Assembly (NCBI RefSeq): GCF_000737315.1
Contig: NZ_JMCB01000006.1
Location: 248,001 to 312,000 of the forward strand
DNA from: Hyalangium minutum
GTDB taxonomy: Bacteria; Myxococcota; Myxococcia; Myxococcales; Myxococcaceae
Direction of reading: 5' to 3'
DNA: 64,000 nucleotides
This document shows positions 11,386-20,512 of the stretch, piece by piece (the stretch's first letter is position 1; the number at the start of each line of letters is the position of its first letter). The notes below the pieces were generated by a model. The model made no database searches. It saw only the letters and a program-made list of their open reading frames with translations, and was not told the DNA's origin. The translations under genes and the position numbers were made by a program.

Positions 11386-12711
11386 ATGAGCCTGGACGTC
11401 CCATTCCTGCGCAGCTTCTTTCGAGCTGTCACCGATCGGCCCATCGAGTTCGATGATGGAGAGCCGTCTACCTACGTGCGGCTCTACGACTCGCCCGCGC
11501 TGGCACCACACGATCCAGTGGAGATGTTGGCTCGGCCCATCGAGTTCGCGCTCGGAAGCAGTGTCCAGCTCTTCTCTGGCTTCCGCGGCTCGGGCAAGAG
11601 CACGGAACTGCGCCGACTCCGCCAGCGGTTGCTCCAGCAGGGTTACAAGGTCGTCCTCTGCGACATTGAGGACTACCTCAACCTCTCGCAGAATGTGGAC
11701 GTGAGCGACTTCCTCATGGCCCTGGCTGGAGCCTTTGGGGAAGGCCTGCGTGCACAAGGCTACCTGAGCGGCGATCCTGCCGAGGAGAACTACTGGGACC
11801 GGCTGGTCGTCTTCCTCAAGGACACGGAGATCCGCATTCCCGAGGTAGGCGCGGGCGGACTGCTCAAGGCCTCGCTCAAGAGCGATCCTTCATTCCGTCA
11901 GAAGCTTCAGGAGCGCATGGCAGGGCACCTGGGCGCGCTCGTTGAGAGCATCCGCACTTTTTTCTCCTCCTGCATCCAGCGCATCAAGAAGAAGTTCGGC
12001 CAAGACACCGAGGTCGTCCTCCTCGTCGACTCGATGGAGCACATCCGAGGAACCTCCACCAACGCCGTGGGCGTGCAGGACTCGGTGATCAACCTTTTCA
12101 CAAGTCACAGCGACAAGCTCCAGTTCGCCGACCTGCATGTCGTCTACACCATCCCGCCCTACCTCAAGGTCCTGTACCAGAACCTCGGGACCCTCTACGC
12201 GCCGGGTGGTGTCTTCGTGCTTCCCACCCTCAAGATCCGCAACAAGGAGGGCTCCGAGGTCTTCCAGCCGGGTCTCGACCTCATGGAAAAGCTCATCTCC
12301 CGCCGGGGCGACTGGCGCAAGCTGCTGGGCGACAACCGCCAGACGCTCGATGAGATCAGCAAGCTCTCGGGTGGGCACCTGCGTGACTTTCTCCGTCTCT
12401 TCGCCGAGATCATCCGCCGTGCGGACAAGCTACCTGTACCGGATGCCACCCTCCAGGCTGCGATTTCCCAAGTCCGCTCCGAGTTCCTCCCTATTGCGGA
12501 CAAGGACGCGATCTGGCTGTCGAAGATTGCCGCCACCCACAGCGTCGCTTTGCCTGACAACAAGGACCTGCACGATCTGGCGCGTTACCTCGATACCCAT
12601 CTGGCGCTCTGCTACCGGAACGGTGACGAGTGGTATGACGTGCATCCTCTGGTGCGCGATGTGGTGCTGAATCAGGCGAAAGCCCTGACACCGGCTCCCG
12701 CCAAGCCGTAG
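11386..12711 (+). CDS. P-loop NTPase (STAND/KAP-like AAA ATPase)
   Basis: Walker A SGFRGSGKST, Walker B VVLLVDSMEH, SGGHLRDF and C-terminal WYDVHPLV. Confidence 0.85.
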   Translation: MSLDVPFLRSFFRAVTDRPIEFDDGEPSTYVRLYDSPALAPHDPVEMLARPIEFALGSSVQLFSGFRGSGKSTELRRLRQRLLQQGYKVVLCDIEDYLNLSQNVDVSDFLMALAGAFGEGLRAQGYLSGDPAEENYWDRLVVFLKDTEIRIPEVGAGGLLKASLKSDPSFRQKLQERMAGHLGALVESIRTFFSSCIQRIKKKFGQDTEVVLLVDSMEHIRGTSTNAVGVQDSVINLFTSHSDKLQFADLHVVYTIPPYLKVLYQNLGTLYAPGGVFVLPTLKIRNKEGSEVFQPGLDLMEKLISRRGDWRKLLGDNRQTLDEISKLSGGHLRDFLRLFAEIIRRADKLPVPDATLQAAISQVRSEFLPIADKDAIWLSKIAATHSVALPDNKDLHDLARYLDTHLALCYRNGDEWYDVHPLVRDVVLNQAKALTPAPAKP

Positions 12712-12728
12712 CGAGGAGCGGAGGCAAG

Positions 12729-15700
12729 ATGAGCCCCCCGTTCGAGGACGACCTGGGTCCATCAGGCGAGTTGGAGTGGGCTCGGCTGAAGCGGCAGGTG
12801 GAACTGGCCGAGGGATTCTGGCTCGGTTTCATCTTCGCCCCGAGCGCAAGGGCCACGGCGGCACTACGTCAGAGAACGGAGCGGTTACTTCGGGGACGAA
12901 CGCGCTCGCTCAGCTACTTTGCCCCGGCAGGCTCAGACGAGTTGCCGACAGTGCTGGCTTCACTACTCTCCAAGCCCGAGCATGCATCGGCTGGCGCGTG
13001 CTGGATCGAGGCATTGCAGGAGGATCCAGGGGATGGGTCCGCTCAGCCATGGCACGACTCCTGGCTGGAGTTGGTATCACGCATGAACGAGCGCCGGGAT
13101 GCCATTCGGCGGCACCTCGGCGGCGGACTCATCCTGGTGTCGTCTCCACGGATGAAGCCGCTGTTTCGCGAAGCTGCCTCTGATCTATGGGCGATCAGGG
13201 CGCTGGTCATCGAGTTCCAGCCCGGAGAGCAGCTCGCTCATGAATCACATGAGCCCAGGCACTCACTTTGGGAGTCTCAAACGCCGCCCGAGTGGACACT
13301 GGCGACGAAGGACCTCGCTTACATCCTGGCAGAGACGGGGAGGCTTTTAGCCAAGCCACATGCACGTGAGACGCCCCAGGCGATCGATGTCCTAGTACGG
13401 AGAGCTGCTGCTTTGACCGCCGCAGGCGAGACGGGAGAGGCCCTACAAGACGCGCGGCAAGCCATGAACCTCTTGCGACGCCATCAAGGCCGTGTTTCCA
13501 CACAACAACAGGTGGCTGTGCTGGAAACGCTCGCGCGAGCCGAAAAGGCCCATGGAGACCTGGATGCCGCTGCAGATCATTTCAGCAGAGCTGCGAAGTT
13601 CCTGAAGCCAGCGAGCAACAGGCATCGACTTCTGTTGCTTGACGAAGTCGCGAGCATCTCGCGTGAGCGAGGAGATCTCAGCCTCGCGAGTGACACATAC
13701 ACCGAGGCCCTCGCCCTCAGCCGCCAGCTGCGCTCCTCCCTCGGCGATTCCCCCACTGCCTTGCGCGACCTCTCCGTCTCTCTCGAAAGGATGGGAGACG
13801 TGCGCCTCGACCTCGGCGACCTGAACGCTGCGGCTGCTGCCTACGAAGAATCCCTCGCCCTCAGACGCCAGCTGCGCTCCTCCCTCGGCGATTCCCCCAC
13901 TGCTTTGCGCGACCTCTCTGTCTCTCTCAATAAAGTGGGCGATGTGCGCCGCGACCTTAGCGACCTGAACGCTTCGGCCGCCGCCTACGAAGAATCCCTC
14001 GCCCTCAGACGCCAGTTGCGCTCCTCCCTCGGCGATTCCCCCACTGCCCTGCGCGACCTCTCCGTTTCTCTCACCAAGATGGGAGACGTGCGCCGCGACC
14101 TCGGCGACCTGAATGCTGCGGCCGCCGCTTACGAAGAATCCCTCGCCCTCTGCCGTCAACTGCGCTCCTCCCTCGGCGATTCCCCCGCTGCCCTGCGCGA
14201 CCTCTCCGTCTCTCTTACCAAGATGGGAGACGCTCGCCGCGACCTCGGCGACCTGAATGTTGCGGCCGCCGCCTACGAAGAATCCCTCGCCCTCAGTCGC
14301 CACCTGCGCTCCTCCCTCAGCGATTCCCCCACTGCTCTGCGCGATCTCTCCATCTCTCTCAATGGAGTGGGAGACGTGCGCCGCGACCTCGGCGACCTGA
14401 ACGCTGCGGCCGCCGCTTACGAAGAATCCCTCGCCCTCTGCCGCCAGCTGCGCTCCTCCCTCGGCGATTCCCCCACTGCCTTGCGCGACCTCTCCGTCTC
14501 TCTCACCAGGGTGGGAGACGTGCGCCGCGACCTCGGCGACCTGAATGCTGCGACCGCGGCCTACGAGGAATTCCTCGCCCTCTGCCGCCAGCTGCGCTCC
14601 TCCCTCGGCGATTCCCCCGCTGCCCTGCGCGACCTCTCCGTCTCTCTCGAAAAGGTGGGCGACGCGCGCCTCGACCTCGGCGACCTGAACGCTGCGGCTG
14701 CTGCCTACGAAGAATCCCTCGCCCTCAGACGCCAGCTGCGCTCCTCCCTCGGCGATTCCCCCACTGCTTTGCGCGACCTCTCTGTCTCTCTCAATAAAGT
14801 GGGCGATGTGCGCCGCGACCTTAGCGACCTGAACGCTTCGGCCGCCGCTTACGAAGAATCCCTCGCCCTCTGCCGCCAGCTGCGCTCCTCCCTCGGCGAT
14901 TCCCCCGCTGCCCTGCGCGACCTCTCCGTTTCTCTCACCAAGATGGGAGACGTGCGCCGCGACCTCGGCGACCTGAATGCTGCGGCCGCCGCTTACGAAG
15001 AATCCCTCGCCCTCTGCCGCCAACTGCGCTCCTCCCTCGGCGATTCCCCCACTGCCTTACGCAACCTCTCCGTCTCTCTCACCAAGATGGGAGACGTGCG
15101 CCGCGACCTCGGCGACCTGAACGCTGCGGCTGCTGCCTACGAAGAATCCCTCGCCCTCTGCCGCCAGTTGCGTTCCTCCCTTGGCGATTCCCCCACTGCC
15201 TTGCGCGACCTCTCTGTCTCTCTCAATAAAGTGGGCGATGTGCGCCGCGACCTTAGCGACTTGAACGCTGCGGCCGCCGCCCACGAAGAATCCCTCGCCC
15301 TCAGACGCCAGTTGCGCTCCTCCCTCGGCGATTCCCCCACTGCCTTGCGCGACCTCTCCGTTTCTCTCACCAAGATGGGAGACGTGCGCCGCGACCTCGG
15401 CGACCTGAATGCTGCGGCCGCCGCTTACGAAGAAGCCCTCGCCCTCTGCCGTCAACTGCGCTCCTCCCTCGGCGATTCCCTCGCTGTCCTGCGCGACCTC
15501 TCCGTCTCTCTTACCAAGATGGGAGACGCTCGCCGCGACCTCGGCGACCTGAATGTTGCGGCCGCCGCCTACGAAGAATCCCTCGCCCTCAGTCGCCACC
15601 TGCGCTCCTCCCTCAGCGATTCCCTCACCGCTCTGCGCGATCTCTCCATCTCTTTCAATAGAGTGGGAGACGTGCGCCGCGACCTTAGCGACCTGAACGC

Positions 15701-16043
15701 TGCGGCCGCCGCTTACGAGGAATCCCTCGCCCTCTGCCGTCAGCTGCGCTCTTCCTGCGGCAATTCTCCCACCGCTCTGCGCGACCTCTCTGTCTCTCTT
15801 AACAAGGTGGGCGACGTGCGCCTTGACCTCGGCGACCTGAGCGCTGCGACTGCGGCCTTCGAGGAATCCCTCGCCCTCTGCCGTCAGCTGCGGTCCATCA
15901 TGGGCGACACTCCGGATATGCGCCACCTGCTTATCTACGTCCTCACCCAGCTAAGTGACACGCGGCAATCGATGGGAGAGGGGGAGGCCAGTCAGGCTGC
16001 TCTCCGCGAGGCCTCCTCGCTCAGGGCGTCTTCCGAGCAGTAA
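12729..16043 (+). CDS. TPR-repeat protein with an N-terminal degenerate NTPase-like domain and 15 x 48-aa repeats
   Basis: 1104-aa ORF with RBS GGAGG, 17 bp after the ATPase stop. Repeat consensus RQLRSSLGDSPTALRDLSVSLxxxGDVRRDLGDLNAAAAAYEESLALx. Confidence 0.9.
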   Translation: MSPPFEDDLGPSGELEWARLKRQVELAEGFWLGFIFAPSARATAALRQRTERLLRGRTRSLSYFAPAGSDELPTVLASLLSKPEHASAGACWIEALQEDPGDGSAQPWHDSWLELVSRMNERRDAIRRHLGGGLILVSSPRMKPLFREAASDLWAIRALVIEFQPGEQLAHESHEPRHSLWESQTPPEWTLATKDLAYILAETGRLLAKPHARETPQAIDVLVRRAAALTAAGETGEALQDARQAMNLLRRHQGRVSTQQQVAVLETLARAEKAHGDLDAAADHFSRAAKFLKPASNRHRLLLLDEVASISRERGDLSLASDTYTEALALSRQLRSSLGDSPTALRDLSVSLERMGDVRLDLGDLNAAAAAYEESLALRRQLRSSLGDSPTALRDLSVSLNKVGDVRRDLSDLNASAAAYEESLALRRQLRSSLGDSPTALRDLSVSLTKMGDVRRDLGDLNAAAAAYEESLALCRQLRSSLGDSPAALRDLSVSLTKMGDARRDLGDLNVAAAAYEESLALSRHLRSSLSDSPTALRDLSISLNGVGDVRRDLGDLNAAAAAYEESLALCRQLRSSLGDSPTALRDLSVSLTRVGDVRRDLGDLNAATAAYEEFLALCRQLRSSLGDSPAALRDLSVSLEKVGDARLDLGDLNAAAAAYEESLALRRQLRSSLGDSPTALRDLSVSLNKVGDVRRDLSDLNASAAAYEESLALCRQLRSSLGDSPAALRDLSVSLTKMGDVRRDLGDLNAAAAAYEESLALCRQLRSSLGDSPTALRNLSVSLTKMGDVRRDLGDLNAAAAAYEESLALCRQLRSSLGDSPTALRDLSVSLNKVGDVRRDLSDLNAAAAAHEESLALRRQLRSSLGDSPTALRDLSVSLTKMGDVRRDLGDLNAAAAAYEEALALCRQLRSSLGDSLAVLRDLSVSLTKMGDARRDLGDLNVAAAAYEESLALSRHLRSSLSDSLTALRDLSISFNRVGDVRRDLSDLNAAAAAYEESLALCRQLRSSCGNSPTALRDLSVSLNKVGDVRLDLGDLSAATAAFEESLALCRQLRSIMGDTPDMRHLLIYVLTQLSDTRQSMGEGEASQAALREASSLRASSEQ
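13722..15881 (+). repeat. 15 x 144-bp in-frame tandem repeat
   Basis: 15 units counted in the translation. 15 x 144 = 2160 bp, matching the span 13722-15881. Confidence 0.95.
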
Positions 16044-16122: not shown

Positions 16123-17862
16123 CTACTCTTGGCGGCGGCGGCGCGCAGCGCCCAGGACCAGCACCAGCGTCAAGGCGCCTACTCCTGCCCCGGGCGAAGC
16201 TCCGCACCCGCAGCCCACCTCGAACACCGAAGGTGACGTCACTCCGCCGGTTGAGGACGCTGTCACATCGAAGCGGTTGGGCGTGGACTGTAGGCTGTAG
16301 GACCCCAGTTCCTCCGCCGAGGCCCACAGTTCATGTGCACCTTCGGCGAGATCCGCGGGCACGTCGTACACAAAGGCCCCCGTGCTGTCCGCTGTCACCT
16401 GCGCATACTCCGTCCCCTCCAGGAACAGATGAACGGAGACTCCCGGTTGCGCAGTGCCTTCGATGCGAGGCTTCCGCGCCACGCCCGTGGCACCATTCGC
16501 GGGCTGGGTCAGCACGGGCGCCGAGGGCACTCGGAAAGGCTGTGAGTACGTGGTCTCGGAACCGTAGGCGGCACCGGAATCGATCGTGCTCGGGCCCGCC
16601 CCAAAGGGGCCACCGGCCGCCGTCGACTGGCCGGGATAGCCCGCGACCACCGAGACCTTGCACGCGATGAACTCGCCCTGCAGCAGGACGACGCCACCGC
16701 CACCGCCTCCGCCAGGCCCCGATTCATTCGTCACGTTGCGGGTGTCTCCGCCCGCTCCGCCCGAGGCCTGCACGAGACCACACGTCAGCGTCCGCTCGGC
16801 GCGCAGGGAGATGGCACCGCCCGCACCTCCACCTCCCGCACCGTCATCGCCCGCGGAGGCTACATAGTCCGCGGAGGCGCCCATGGCGCTGAACCGGCCT
16901 GTCCCCACCACATCTCTCGCACGGATGAGAACCACCCCACCGCCCGCCGCCCCTGGAGTGCCTACATCCACATGGCCGCTTCCGCCCCCGCCTCCGCCTC
17001 CAAAGACGAGGCGCTCGTAGGGCAGATAGACCAGGGGAGCACCTCCCAGCCCTCCCACGTCATCCGGCTGCGGCAGCCGTCCGAGAGAGTACCCTCCCTG
17101 GCCTCCCGCCCCCGAGTGGCCTCCGCCTCCTCCGCCCGAGCTGTGGCAGTTGCCCGCCCCGCCCGCGTTGGCCAGGTTCCCCCGTCCCCCCGCGATACCG
17201 AAGCGCCCAGCCACCAGCCCCTCTCCTTTATAGGAGCTGCCCACCCCCGGAGCCTCATCGAGCGCCGTGCAACCTTCGCCTGCCAGGTGGTTGATGAACG
17301 CGCCGCCACGGAAGCCCGCGCCATCGGCGCCGATGAGCCCTCCATTGGTCAGCGTGCCCGTGGCCATCAGCGCCAGGATGCCACCCGCGCTCCCATTCCA
17401 GGGCACTGCCTTCAGCGAGCCGTCCTCGACCACCAAAACATCCGTGTACTCGGGCACGTTCACCACTTGGGCCGCGCTGGCCGCATAGCTCCTCTGCAGC
17501 GGCGCGGTCAGCCGCAGCGAGGCCTCTGTCGCCGCCTCCACCCGTGCGTATTCGAACCGTCCCACCGGACTGGCTTCGAGCGGGATGGCCGCTGCATCTC
17601 CCGAGGCCGGTGCGGGCAGCAGGCCCGTGGACTGATGCACGAGCACCAGCTCGCCCGCCTTGAAGGCTCCCGCGTTGGAGATCGTCAGCTCCTTCGTTCC
17701 AGCCGCCGCGTTCGCGGTGAGCGCTCCCACGTGGTTGATGACCCTGTTCGGGCTCAACACCTGCAACACGCCATCCCGGCCGGTACCGAGCCCGAAGGTG
17801 TCCGGCTCGGCCAGCGCACCACCCGCAAGGAGCCATCCAGCCAAGAAAAGGGGGATTCGCAT
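16123..17862 (-). CDS. AgmC-like secreted Gly-rich protein with an Ig-like domain and a MYXO-CTERM-type sorting tail
   Basis: Signal peptide then EPDTFGLGTGRDG. The C-terminus is GCGCGASPG-hydrophobic-RRRRQE. Start at MRIPLF. Confidence 0.75.
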   Translation of the reverse strand: MRIPLFLAGWLLAGGALAEPDTFGLGTGRDGVLQVLSPNRVINHVGALTANAAAGTKELTISNAGAFKAGELVLVHQSTGLLPAPASGDAAAIPLEASPVGRFEYARVEAATEASLRLTAPLQRSYAASAAQVVNVPEYTDVLVVEDGSLKAVPWNGSAGGILALMATGTLTNGGLIGADGAGFRGGAFINHLAGEGCTALDEAPGVGSSYKGEGLVAGRFGIAGGRGNLANAGGAGNCHSSGGGGGGHSGAGGQGGYSLGRLPQPDDVGGLGGAPLVYLPYERLVFGGGGGGGSGHVDVGTPGAAGGGVVLIRARDVVGTGRFSAMGASADYVASAGDDGAGGGGAGGAISLRAERTLTCGLVQASGGAGGDTRNVTNESGPGGGGGGGVVLLQGEFIACKVSVVAGYPGQSTAAGGPFGAGPSTIDSGAAYGSETTYSQPFRVPSAPVLTQPANGATGVARKPRIEGTAQPGVSVHLFLEGTEYAQVTADSTGAFVYDVPADLAEGAHELWASAEELGSYSLQSTPNRFDVTASSTGGVTSPSVFEVGCGCGASPGAGVGALTLVLVLGAARRRRQE

Positions 17863-17906
17863 GAGGCGATGGTGCCTCAGCGCACCGAGACCGGTCGAGT
17901 CTCTGC

Positions 17907-18443
17907 TCAGCCGACGCGCCGCACGATGAACTCGCAGTAGGGGGCCCCGTCGTGCATACACTGCTTCTCCTTCACGTCCGCGCGTTGCCCCAGCGCAAGA
18001 GCCAGCCCTCGCACGAGGCCGATGCCCATCCCGCACATCTTCCGGGGCGAGGCGTACACGACACGCACTGTGGAGGCATCCACGCGGTGGCAATCCAATC
18101 GGGACGGCTGGGCGTGCGGATCCTTGCGTACCTTCTCGTGGATGCGCTCGACGTTCTCGACCACTTCGAGGATGCCCCACCCGGGCTGGATGACTCCCCG
18201 GTAGATCTTCATGAGCCCGGGGACGATGAACTCACCGAAGTCCTCGAGTAGGAACCTCACGGAGCGCCCCATCACCCGCGAGGCCGCGTGGACGAGCGCT
18301 CCCACCTCTTCATCCGGGTAGCTCTGGAAGGCCAAGTAGATCCGCGAGGGGAGCTTCGCCTCTTTGACGAGCGTCTCCCAGCCCTGCTCGCCCATGCGCT
18401 CCTGCGCATAGGTGCGGAGCTGGTTGAAGATGATGCCGTGCAT
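17907..18443 (-). CDS. H-NOX (heme NO-binding) domain protein
   Basis: MHGIIF start, YPDEE, FGEF, a candidate proximal His (ERIHEK), a YxSxR motif (YASPR) and C-terminal CMHDGAPYCEF. Confidence 0.82.
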   Translation of the reverse strand: MHGIIFNQLRTYAQERMGEQGWETLVKEAKLPSRIYLAFQSYPDEEVGALVHAASRVMGRSVRFLLEDFGEFIVPGLMKIYRGVIQPGWGILEVVENVERIHEKVRKDPHAQPSRLDCHRVDASTVRVVYASPRKMCGMGIGLVRGLALALGQRADVKEKQCMHDGAPYCEFIVRRVG

Positions 18444-18531: not shown

Positions 18532-19032
18532 TCAGGCACTCTCTGTGAGGCTCTGGAGGGACCGCGCGTTCATAGGAGCGAAGAAGGGCTGGCGCAGCAG
18601 CCGGGACACCGAGCGCTTGTCCACGCACAGCAACTGGAGCGAGTCCGCCCACTCGCCGAGCACGGCGATGGCGCGCACGTCCGGCGCCTCGCGGTAGAGA
18701 TCATTCAGGTTGTGCACCAGCGCGCTCAGGTCCTCCACCTCCCAGCGCTCGGTGAGTTCGCCCACCAGCACGTGCAGTTCCAGCGTGCCGCGCTCGCGGA
18801 CATCCACGAGCTTGAAGCTCCGGGCCGCGCCGCCCATGGCCAGCGTGAGTGGACCGACGAGCTCATCCGGGCGGACGCCCAACGCCACCGAGAGGCCTCC
18901 GTGAAGCAGGCCCGCGTCACACAGGCGCAGGAGCGCCACGTGCGGAGGCTCGCCTGGGACGATGACCTCGGCGGCGGCCGAGCGGTCCTTCAAGAGGCGC
19001 TCTCGGGCGAGTGTGTCGATCTGGGAGGCCAT
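18532..19032 (-). CDS. Hypothetical protein (166 aa)
   Basis: ORF from MASQIDTLARERLL with typical GC-rich codon bias. Confidence 0.65.
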   Translation of the reverse strand: MASQIDTLARERLLKDRSAAAEVIVPGEPPHVALLRLCDAGLLHGGLSVALGVRPDELVGPLTLAMGGAARSFKLVDVRERGTLELHVLVGELTERWEVEDLSALVHNLNDLYREAPDVRAIAVLGEWADSLQLLCVDKRSVSRLLRQPFFAPMNARSLQSLTESA

Positions 19033-19210
19033 GGCACGCACCCTACCGCTCTCGCGCTCACAAGGGGGGCGCGACGAGCGTAGGAGCCTCCAGCAGCCGA
19101 CACACCCTGGCGGCGCAGGGCTCCGTGCTGCTCCAGGAATCCACCTCGGGGGTTCATCTCGACAGTTCATCGAGTCGAGTCGAGAATCCCTCCCAAGGAG
19201 CACTGAGGAC

Positions 19211-20512
19211 ATGGTGAAGCGGAGAGATGGCCGTTCTCAATCTCGATTCAGCGATCGACATGAGGATCTGCTGACAGCCGCCGAAGCGGCGGAGCTGCTG
19301 GGGGTGAAGCGGGCAACGCTCTACACCTATGTGAGCCGTGGGCTCGTGCGCTGTGTCCCCGAAGCGGGCACCAAGGAGAACCGCTACGTCCGCATGGACC
19401 TGGAGCGGCTGAAGACCCGGCATGATGCACGGGCGGGCCATGCGGCAGTGGCCTCGGCAGCCCTGCGCTGGGGTGAGCCGGTGATCGACTCCTCCATCTC
19501 CCGCATCAGCCCGGAGGGGCTGGAGTACCGCAAGCACCTGGCGGTGGAGCTGGCGGTGCAGGGATGTTCCTTCGAGCAGGTGGCGGAGCTGCTGTGGACG
19601 GGTGAGCTGCCCTCCGCACCCGTCCGCTGGCCCGCGCTGGAGCTGCCCTTCCCCCCTTCTTCGATCTTGGGGCTGCTGCCACGGGACGCTCCACCCCTCA
19701 CGGCCTTGTCAGCCCTGGTGCCACTGCTGGGAGCTTCGGACGCGGCGCGCTTCGCCTCACCCCCCGAGCAGGAGCGGCTGCGAGCCCGGCGTCTCTTGCG
19801 CCATCTGGGAGCCTGGGTGGGCGGAGTCCGAGGCGCCTCGCGAGTCGCCCAGGCGTTGAAGGAAGACACTGTGGCGGCCTCTCTGGCACGCGCGTGGGGC
19901 GTGGAGGTGAAGAAGGCAGCGGGGCCGCTGGACCGGGCGCTGGTGCTGTGCGCGGACCACGAGCTGAACGTGTCGGCCTTCACGGCGCGCGTGGTGGCCT
20001 CCTCGGGCGCGGACCTGTACGCATGCGTGGGCGCGGCGCTGGCGGCATTGTCAGGCCCACGGCATGGAGGCTCCTGCGATCGCATCGAGGCGCTGATGCA
20101 GGAGGCCGGCCACCCCGAGCGCGCTGCCACGGTGGTGCGCGAGCGGCTGCGCCGAGGCGAGTCCGTGCCGGGCTTTGGCCACCCGCTCTATCCGAAGGGT
20201 GATCCCCGCACGCCTCCCCTGTTGGAGGCAGCCTGGGCTGTGCGTCCGGAGCCTGCGGCGGTGCGGGTGGTGCGAGCCGTCGCCGAGGCCATGGGCGAGG
20301 CCGGGCACCCTCTGCCCACCATCGACTTCGGGCTGGTGGCGCTGTCCGCGGCACTGGGGCTGCCACCGGGAGCAGCGGCCGCAGTGTTCGCAGTGGGACG
20401 CGGCGCGGGCTGGGTGGCCCACGTCCTGGAGCAGCGTGAGCAGGGCCACCTCCTGCGCCCCCGCGCGAGGTACGTGGAGCCTCCTCCCCGAGGTGTCGCA
20501 CCCGAGCCGTAG
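19211..20512 (+). CDS. HTH (excisionase/MerR-like) - citrate synthase family fusion protein
   Basis: LLTAAEAAELLGVKRATLYTYVSRG is the HTH. DHELN, GPRHGG, GFGHPLY and IDF are citrate synthase motifs. RBS AGGA before ATG 19211. Confidence 0.88.
   Translation: MVKRRDGRSQSRFSDRHEDLLTAAEAAELLGVKRATLYTYVSRGLVRCVPEAGTKENRYVRMDLERLKTRHDARAGHAAVASAALRWGEPVIDSSISRISPEGLEYRKHLAVELAVQGCSFEQVAELLWTGELPSAPVRWPALELPFPPSSILGLLPRDAPPLTALSALVPLLGASDAARFASPPEQERLRARRLLRHLGAWVGGVRGASRVAQALKEDTVAASLARAWGVEVKKAAGPLDRALVLCADHELNVSAFTARVVASSGADLYACVGAALAALSGPRHGGSCDRIEALMQEAGHPERAATVVRERLRRGESVPGFGHPLYPKGDPRTPPLLEAAWAVRPEPAAVRVVRAVAEAMGEAGHPLPTIDFGLVALSAALGLPPGAAAAVFAVGRGAGWVAHVLEQREQGHLLRPRARYVEPPPRGVAPEP

Follow-up and report, generated by a model that had tools for sequence, protein, structure and literature searches.

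Tandem repeat arrays with high internal conservation (HIC) and few diversifying residues are thought to be a route by which fungal NOD-like receptors (NLRs) quickly gain new recognition specificities. Marold et al. 2015 is reportedly among the sources on the HIC arrays of 42-residue tetratricopeptide repeats (TPRs) in these receptors. The comparators used here are the HIC 42-residue TPR arrays of NB-ARC NLRs, such as Podospora anserina Pa_2_10340 (Dyrka et al. 2014, PMC4986451; Ament-Velasquez & Saupe 2026, PMC13449251). In fungal arrays of this type, three positively selected sites are found on the concave side and repeat number is polymorphic (PMC4986451). HIC repeats have also been reported in bacterial NLRs (PMC13449251), where they have so far been noted only in passing. 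The stretch of DNA analysed here (64,000 nucleotides (nt), hereafter the window) covers positions 248,001 to 312,000 of the forward strand of contig NZ_JMCB01000006.1 from Hyalangium minutum (assembly GCF_000737315.1). It contains a gene for an 1104-residue TPR protein (12729-16043, + strand), immediately preceded by a gene for an ATPase (11386-12711, + strand), and the TPR protein carries 15 tandem units of 48 amino acids (aa). The array is, in our view, probably the variable recognition array of a two-gene ATPase/repeat-protein module, a HIC-like sensor as in fungal NLRs. The phenomenon is known in kind. New are the strict 48-residue hairpin, the splitting of ATPase and sensor between two genes with an unclassified N-terminal domain, the broad bacterial spread and a second selected position on helix B of the unit. 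The 48-residue family is a clean bacterial case, in which the period is strict, two positions show an excess of non-synonymous change, array size varies between close relatives and the ATPase has its own gene.

Tandem Repeats Finder reported a single array, at 13708-15896 (period 144, 15.2 copies, 87% matches, score 3214). It resolves into 15 in-frame units of 144 nt (13722-15881, + strand; unit i, numbered from 0, starts at 13722+144*i), all of them in frame within the 1104-aa open reading frame (ORF). Codons 22 and 23 occupy +63 to +68 of each unit, and codon 48 occupies +141 to +143. The array is closed by a C-terminal cap (15882-16043, + strand) that consists of a degenerate 16th unit (15882-16025), a short tail and the stop codon; the cap scores 14.7 bits against the hidden Markov model (HMM) of the unit, regular units about 100 bits, and homologues have an equivalent cap. 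An earlier note, drawn from the bare sequence, had described these units as nearly identical apart from a hypervariable tri-residue at positions 22-24, and had likened the array to a programmable specificity code. Re-translation from 13722 returned the same 15 tri-residues in the same order (ERM, NKV, TKM, TKM, NGV, TRV, EKV, NKV, TKM, TKM, NKV, TKM, TKM, NRV, NKV), together with the minor variation that had been listed at positions 29 (R in 12 units, L in 3), 32 (G in 11, S in 4) and 48 (C in 9, R in 4, S in 2). Further variable positions in the window array are 12 (T/A), 27 (V/A), 2, 8, 11, 19, 36-38, 41 and 44. Near-identity here stands for a pairwise identity averaging 85.9% at the amino acid level (71-98%) and 88.1% at the nucleotide level (79-99%). 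These values place the window array among HIC repeats, whose units are at least about 80-85% identical.

Two block duplications in the window array are recent. Self-comparison at unit offsets showed that a five-unit block, units 0-4 (13722-14441, + strand), is duplicated as units 9-13 (15018-15737), and that the first three units of this block, 0-2, have a further copy on the same strand as units 6-8 (14586-15017). At an offset of nine units, units 0-4 differ from units 9-13 by 10, 7, 2, 2 and 7 nt, respectively; at an offset of six, units 0-2 differ from units 6-8 by 6, 3 and 2 nt. Other pairs of units differ by 10-30 nt. Grouped by DNA, the units fall into the sets {0,6}, {1,7,10}, {2,8,11}, {3,12} and {4,13}, with units 5, 9 and 14 each standing alone. 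Because units 0-4 were copied as 9-13 and units 0-2 as 6-8, the 15 tri-residues are not independent readings. Two long ORFs on the opposite strand, 13443-15023 (-, 526 aa) and 15057-15926 (-, 289 aa), lie almost wholly inside the array; they were dismissed as genes, being most likely by-products of a stop-free, GC-rich repeat.

Variation among the units of the window is concentrated at a few codons. Over the 44 background codons, Nei-Gojobori diversity was 0.223 at synonymous sites (piS) and 0.050 at non-synonymous sites (piN), a ratio of 0.22; per-codon piN was 0.408 and 0.362 at codons 22 and 48, and 0.216 at each of codons 23 and 24. When changes were placed on a neighbour-joining tree of the units, codons 22, 23, 24 and 48 together received 16 of the 45 non-synonymous changes (binomial P=2e-6), and codons 22-24 by themselves took 9 of the 45 (P=0.004). 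Among the recently duplicated unit pairs, positions 22, 23 or 48 accounted for 6 of 20 non-synonymous codon changes. The per-codon comparison of non-synonymous and synonymous change (dN/dS) that the earlier note had proposed has been carried out, and both the tree counts and the diversity estimates confirm that non-synonymous variation is focused and not spread evenly along the unit. The array is not freshly homogenised, given a synonymous diversity between units of 0.22. Since the units have diverged appreciably at synonymous sites, the conserved protein sequence also reflects purifying selection, and not only recent homogenisation.

The same hotspot positions recur in 13 arrays from other taxa, which, together with that of the window, form a set of 14 arrays of 6-15 regular units. 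The ratio of piN at positions 22 and 23 to background piS exceeded 1 in 12 of the 14 arrays (range 0.73-2.66), and the corresponding ratio for position 48 did so in all 14 (range 1.01-4.53), with a background omega of 0.22-0.50. Codon-parsimony counts pooled over the 14 unit trees, with P values against neutrality, gave a dN/dS of 2.22 for position 48 (P=2e-10), 1.47 for position 22 (P=0.003), 1.09 for position 23 (not significant) and 0.29 for position 24; the background stood at 0.31, and no other unit position exceeded 0.80. Mean within-array entropy was 1.64 bits at both 22 and 48, 1.28 at 23 and 0.44 at 24, the next highest value after the first three being 0.84 at position 13. The residues used are chemically diverse at position 22 (N, D, G, I, E, T, R, S and V) and also many at position 48 (R, A, D, T, S, C, H, V, I and, once, Q), about 47% of units having R, D or H there. 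Of 129 units, 103 carry K or R at position 23 and another 13 carry N, and substitutions at position 24 are conservative, within the hydrophobic set V/M/L/I. The di-residues NK, DR, GR, ER, IK and RK recur across different lineages. Units cluster by array, which points to concerted evolution or independent expansion. Of the proposed hypervariable tri-residue, position 22 is thus retained, position 23 becomes a K/R/N toggle with a dN/dS of about 1.1, and position 24 drops out at a background rate. Position 48, whose variation had been ranked as lesser, is instead the most variable and the most strongly selected. The best explanation is that positions 22 and 48 are under diversifying selection and most other positions under purifying selection, which agrees with the HIC pattern of few positively selected positions per unit.

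Such focused variability could also arise in a structural scaffold with neutral 'holes', in which 22, 23 and 48 would be surface positions free of packing or salt-bridge constraint, and relaxed constraint plus shuffling would do the rest. Position 23, with its conservative K/R variation and a dN/dS near 1.1, behaves as such an account would have it. Position 22 exceeds 1 only modestly, the GC-biased third codon positions (GC3, 0.76 in the array) could depress dS, and neither a ligand nor a defence context was found for the module, all of which are to its advantage. It has to contend, however, with position 48, where the excess over background is strong in the pooled counts and present in every array, and with further positions predicted from helical periodicity to be exposed (12, 13, 29, 30, 38, 39 and 46), which stay at a dN/dS of 0.4-0.8. 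The same two hotspots, with a recurrent set of residues, appear in independently expanded arrays from different phyla, and position 22 maps to a known ligand-contact position (see below). Neutral holes are thus possible for position 23 and a poor fit for positions 22 and 48, and we consider it unlikely, without dismissing it, that they explain the array as a whole. If the variation were neutral, the finding would shrink to an unusual TPR length variant.

The units are TPRs by profile and by predicted fold. Pfam TPR_12 matched the protein with E=1.1e-45 and 154 bits (cut-off 30.1), and TPR_2, TPR_8, TPR_1 and TPR_10 also scored above their own cut-offs. An AlphaFold2 (AF2) model of aa 1-571, built with 15 homologues, had a mean predicted local distance difference test (pLDDT) score of 87.9, with values above 90 throughout the repeats. 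In this model, helix A comprises positions 11-30 (20 residues), a turn positions 31-33, and helix B positions 34-48 plus 1-7 of the next unit (22 residues), giving stacked hairpins of alternating 20- and 22-residue helices with 3-residue turns. The canonical 34-residue TPR period is absent; the longer period pointed out in the earlier note is strictly 48 residues in every family member examined. The repeat is therefore a length variant like the 42PR class, and would be a '48PR' in the nPR nomenclature, in which 42PR helices are 3-4 residues longer than those of the 34PR (PMC5642895). No paper on a 48-residue TPR-like repeat was found in the literature, and position-specific TPR hypervariability is not described by Kaur et al. 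2020 (PMC7159879).

Foldseek searches of the PDB retrieved as best matches the superhelices of Pins/LGN, OGT, consensus TPR (CTPR) and KLC1 (E ~2e-9, target template modelling (TM) score up to 0.8). The best match in both structure and sequence is the TPR superhelix of Pins/LGN (GPSM2; Foldseek E about 2e-9, target TM 0.74-0.78). LGN is a eukaryotic protein whose 40-residue repeats, unlike those of the window, are mutually divergent and without hypervariable or HIC behaviour. In phmmer alignments, V/M24-G25-D26 aligns with the Leu-Gly-Asn triplet of Pins, and the eight residues by which the unit is longer are placed in the N-terminal part of helix A, so that position 22 corresponds to TPR position 5, 23 to position 6, 26 to position 9 and 48 to position 31. 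The TPR groove is lined by helices A (PMC5642895), and in LGN, Asn residues hydrogen-bond the ligand backbone in the inner groove (PMC3438535). TPR positions 2, 5, 9, 12, 13, 33 and 34 are the most variable and concave-facing, and ligand contacts in HOP involve positions 2, 5, 6, 9, 12 and 13 (PMC1261162). Aligned to Pins/LGN, positions 22 and 23 fall in the middle of helix A, a turn ahead of the Asn of L-G-N that lines the groove; this is the groove-type helix to which the earlier note had assigned position 22, and both positions are probably groove-lining. In an alternative register, with 22 as TPR position 12 and 23 as position 13, they would also be concave, given the heptad-like spacing of the buried stripe of helix A (14, 17/18, 21, 24/25, 28, 31). 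The same helical face carries the conserved R15/D16 and D26 and the moderately variable R29/D30. D26 sits at the groove Asn position of LGN, which in the window array is thus a conserved Asp. Helical periodicity places position 24 on the buried face of helix A. By the same reasoning, position 48, mid-helix B, is on the side facing the A-helix layer, and may extend between neighbouring A helices to the floor of the groove or be positioned elsewhere.

Helical-hairpin arrays with variation focused at two positions per unit and a variable repeat number are also known from transcription activator-like effectors (TALEs), to which the earlier note had drawn a parallel, and from pentatricopeptide repeat (PPR) proteins. 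This likeness is formal only. In TALEs, the variable di-residue is located in the inter-helix loop of 33-35-aa repeats and reads DNA bases, whereas the variable residues of the window are mid-helix, in A and B of a 48-aa unit. PPR proteins read RNA on a basic surface, whereas the consensus unit here is slightly acidic (net charge -1), and its exposed helix A residues (R15, D16, K23, D26, R29 and D30) are charge-balanced, not basic. An acidic-to-neutral unit argues against nucleic-acid binding.

These comparisons bear on a true modular code, in which each unit would read one element of a polymer (peptide or nucleic acid) through positions 22 and 48, and the order of units would spell the target for an ORC-like ATPase. 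Each unit has two diverse positions, one at TPR position 5 in helix A and the other close to where units join, an arrangement reminiscent of the PPR code, which uses positions 5 and 35. The recurrent di-residues amount to a small alphabet shared across lineages, arrays vary freely in length, an Orc/Cdc6-type fold with a winged helix is predicted for the partner ATPase, and one gammaproteobacterial clade has a Type III-like DNA methyltransferase gene downstream, translationally coupled to the TPR gene. This last link is, however, confined to that clade and decayed in 3 of 7 loci, and no one-repeat-one-residue code operates in the nearest structural relatives, which are peptide binders. With the charge of the unit and the mid-helix placement of its variable residues also speaking against it, we regard a code of this type as quite improbable. 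Only slightly better are the prospects of a re-writable modular device, whose units would each supply a 'letter', set by positions 22 and 48, for reading an extended polymer (peptide, possibly nucleic acid), which would be reprogrammed by shuffling, duplication and patch conversion, and whose read-out would fall to the separately encoded ORC/STAND-like ATPase (STAND, signal transduction ATPases with numerous domains); this, too, we rate as rather improbable. If true, it would be a split bacterial NLR-like receptor with a decipherable repeat code.

The family is widespread, and its arrays differ between close relatives. When the first 331 aa of the TPR protein were used as query, homologues with the same 48-aa unit in only 2-5 copies were retrieved from Cystobacter, Archangium and metagenomes. 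A scan of one genome per species gave 31 loci, from Myxococcota, metagenome-assembled genomes (MAGs) of Gammaproteobacteria, Acidobacteriota, Actinomycetota and Binatia; the period is exactly 48 residues in every locus, and arrays range from 2 to 16 units. Apart from that of the window, ten arrays of 6-15 units have mean nucleotide identities between units of 82-89%, and three 6-unit arrays of 68-75%. In Cystobacter, arrays of 5, 10 and 11 units occur beside ATPases that share 94-97.5% identity, in TPR proteins that share 83-87% identity over their first 329 aa, and two of these arrays (loci L002 and L004) have the first two and last two units in common and differ in the interior block. This is the polymorphism in number and order between close relatives that is typical of HIC repeats. 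The closest syntenic orthologue of the window (L001/L036) keeps the Metallophos, ATPase, TPR, Big_13 and HNOB neighbours; its ATPase is 93% identical to that of the window and its N-terminal region 73%, and it has only three units and the cap. Two metagenomic versions of this orthologue, L001 (3316-4899) and L035 (6021-7604), have identical ATPase and Metallophos genes and differ by six substitutions within one 28-nt tract of unit 3 (gene nt 1344-1371), which makes positions 22 and 23 differ (EK versus DN) and includes four synonymous sites. The tract represents either a short conversion patch or a longer array that collapsed in assembly.

Assembly deserves attention, as the related short-read contigs of L037 (7344-8360) and L038 (7341-8438) end 8 and 35 codons into the array; the ATPase of L037 belongs to the same 90%-identity cluster as that of the window, and that of L038 is 83% identical to it. 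Since such contigs break at the repeat, public array lengths, possibly including the short ones, may be unreliable. It could be argued from these breaks, and from the draft state of the window genome, that the variation is a mis-assembly artefact of the repeat, or alternatively that a diversity-generating retroelement mutates the A-rich codons 22 and 23 (AAT, AAA, AAG, ACC, GAA). The same 48-aa arrays with the same hotspots are, however, present in complete chromosomes and single-chromosome MAGs (NZ_CP043491.1 and OZ/OY records), and the variation extends across 15 units instead of being confined to a single variable region. Artefact or targeted mutagenesis is, on this evidence, very improbable. 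We also sought a retroelement directly and discarded it, as the unit has no template-like copy elsewhere in the 64-kb window and none of the long ORFs there carries the Y-x-D-D motif of reverse transcriptases.

Upstream of the array, the TPR protein (gene also called in GCA_000737315.1, JMCB01000006.1) begins with a domain of aa 1-162 (12729-13214, + strand) that was modelled as an alpha/beta fold with five strands. A predicted disordered linker follows (aa 166-194, 13224-13310, + strand), with pLDDT below 50 and poor conservation in alignments. Degenerate, non-repetitive TPR-like helices (aa 196-331, 13314-13721, + strand; helices 196-338 in the model, with a Pfam TPR_MalT match at aa 221-383) then precede and cap the array. 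Invariant residues of the N-terminal domain are W17, W31, W92, W108, W154, N120 and R123, together with an N-E-R-R-D-A-L-R motif. HMMER searches with this domain retrieved 927 representatives of 50%-identity clusters at E<=1e-3, in which it is always located at the protein N-terminus. The best 150 of these 927 matches are 142-1125 aa long, which puts the window protein among the longest in the family. Where family members carry any label in the source databases, it is only 'tetratricopeptide repeat protein' or 'hypothetical protein'. The domain is a candidate new domain family. The possibility that it is a degenerate paralogue of the ATPase was rejected (hhalign probability 0.3%).

The partner is a 441-aa P-loop ATPase (11386-12711, + strand), for which an Orc/Cdc6-STAND-like AAA+ fold with a C-terminal winged helix is predicted. 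In Pfam it has only weak AAA_22 and AAA_16 matches and no NB-ARC or NACHT match, and comparison of its profile with PDB sequences gave P-loop-only matches. Walker A (G65..G68xG70K71xT73) and Walker B (D215) are invariant. Its AF2 model (pLDDT 88, predicted TM score 0.88) comprises a P-loop core, a helical domain and a terminal winged helix, and aa 1-58 form two short helices only. The best Foldseek matches were the archaeal ATPases 2qen and 2fna, Orc1/Cdc6, Apaf-1, CED-4 and RdrA (E 1e-7 to 1e-4), with query TM scores that are modest, only 0.3-0.4. A spacer of 17 nt (12712-12728, + strand) separates the two genes and reads TAG cgaggagcggaggcaag ATG, with a GGAGG Shine-Dalgarno sequence, as an operon junction; no promoter-like site and no + strand terminator-like site was found between the ATPase and TPR genes. 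In about 29 of the 31 loci, spanning five phyla and otherwise unrelated neighbourhoods, the TPR gene is immediately preceded by the ATPase gene. Conservation decreases from the ATPase to the N-terminal domain and then to the array. The ATPase itself has at least 1377 homologue matches, and the best 120 of these are at least 53% identical to the query.

Judged by the predicted models, the ATPase/TPR pair looks like a STAND/NLR-type switch split into a nucleoside triphosphatase (NTPase) and a sensor. The parallel with the HIC TPR/WD repeats of fungal NLRs, which the earlier note had drawn, holds for repeat-number polymorphism and for dN/dS above 1. Both have near-identical tandem TPR-like hairpins longer than 34 aa, few selected positions in an otherwise conserved unit, polymorphism in number and order between close relatives and an association with an ATPase, which is of STAND type in the fungal receptors and predicted to be STAND-like in the bacterial module. 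They differ in period, which is 42 aa in the fungal arrays and 48 in the window. In fungal NLRs, moreover, the ATPase is part of the receptor, whereas here it is separate, much shorter and Orc/Cdc6-like, not NB-ARC/NACHT by sequence. The bacterial module has no recognisable N-terminal death or effector domain, occurs in at least five phyla and has one of its selected positions on helix B. A homologue search with the repeats alone, aimed at fusions to NB-ARC or NACHT domains, returned only TPR proteins of 106-333 aa without NTPase domains. The antiviral Avs/bNLR receptors likewise combine an AAA+/STAND-like NTPase with a C-terminal alpha-helical repeat sensor that evolves faster (PMC13581612). 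Avs proteins are single polypeptides with an N-terminal effector and an irregular, non-HIC TPR-like sensor (PMC13581612), whereas the window has two genes, 17 nt apart, and a perfectly periodic array, without an effector, a PADLOC match or a defence-island context.

If the array is indeed the recognition part of a two-gene module, its working could be pictured as follows. Gene 1 (11386-12711) encodes the Orc/Cdc6-STAND-like AAA+ ATPase, and gene 2 (12729-16043) the N-terminal domain joined to a TPR superhelix of 48-residue hairpins. On this reading, units are duplicated, deleted and patch-converted through recombination between near-identical copies, while positions 22 and 48 diversify and purifying selection holds most of the remaining positions. 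The array would most likely function as a ligand-binding surface, whose specificity would be reset by substitutions at the variable positions and by changes in the number and order of unit types. The ATPase would then respond to ligand binding, with the two polypeptides together working like a split STAND/NLR switch, and the module may have a role in non-self recognition.

Several points weigh against this interpretation. Some concern the estimates: the window belongs to a draft assembly, so that unit number and order could hold assembly errors, and several of the 14 arrays come from related MAGs and are not fully independent. A dN/dS above 1 relies on a background dS that selection on codon usage (GC3) could depress, an effect opposite in direction to the neglect of transition bias in the Nei-Gojobori (NG86) method, and recombination between units inflates tree-based counts, with which pairwise estimates nevertheless agree. 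Others concern the structure, in which the groove exposure of positions 22 and 23 derives from homology mapping and helical periodicity, and the strongest signal, position 48, is on helix B, classically the convex side or the core. The remainder concern biological context. The ATPase is about 55% identical across phyla, a degree of conservation that is unusual in a conflict system. The N-terminal domain has no sequence match in Pfam (which was also empty for 21 N-terminal domains), NCBIfam, PADLOC or the PDB. In PADLOC-DB v2.0.0, the best match of the ATPase was mad8 at noise level (E=8e-5, 20 bits), the N-terminal domain had none and the full-length TPR protein matched only a generic TPR model. 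Almost no defence genes were detected by PADLOC among 91 flanking proteins from 15 loci, and hence the module is not located in defence islands. It also has no known ligand, phenotype or recognisable effector domain. An NCBIfam scan of both proteins likewise gave noise-level matches only, and identity with a known defence system was rejected on the basis of these scans and of flanks without defence genes.

A separately encoded ATPase means that sensor and switch can be expressed and manipulated independently. If the array is the sensor, swaps of units could directly show whether specificity is modular, in which case the interest of the system would be high. Repeat-protein engineering would also have a natural scaffold in the long, idealised 48-residue hairpin.

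The module (11386-16043) is lower in GC and GC3 than its surroundings, with a GC content of 61-68% and a GC3 of 0.67-0.81, compared with a GC3 of 0.88-0.91 in the flanking Metallophos and H-NOX genes, which suggests lateral acquisition or different codon selection. In Archangium violaceum, a longer ATPase homologue of 687 aa (P0041) has SMC/AAA_15/AAA_23-type domains and could be a fusion or a gene-call artefact. The methyltransferase mentioned above, of about 1100 aa and Type III-like, starts 4 nt before the stop codon of the TPR gene in one clade of Gammaproteobacteria MAGs and is absent from the window. It was located at 8472-11951 in L017, 9039-12326 in L019, 8319-11570 in L021 and 9183-12536 in L032, with matches to PADLOC MTase_III (E=6e-189) and Pfam N6_N4_Mtase, and only as fragments in L016, L018 and L020. 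It was rejected as a universal third component on account of this restricted and partly decayed distribution. Downstream of the TPR gene in the window, three neighbours are also present in the L001/L036 and L035 loci: a Gly-rich secreted protein with a faint Big_13 match (16123-18180, - strand), a 178-aa H-NOX (HNOB)/V4R protein (17907-18443, - strand) and an ORF with an HTH_17-like N-terminus and a citrate-synthase domain (18962-20512, + strand).

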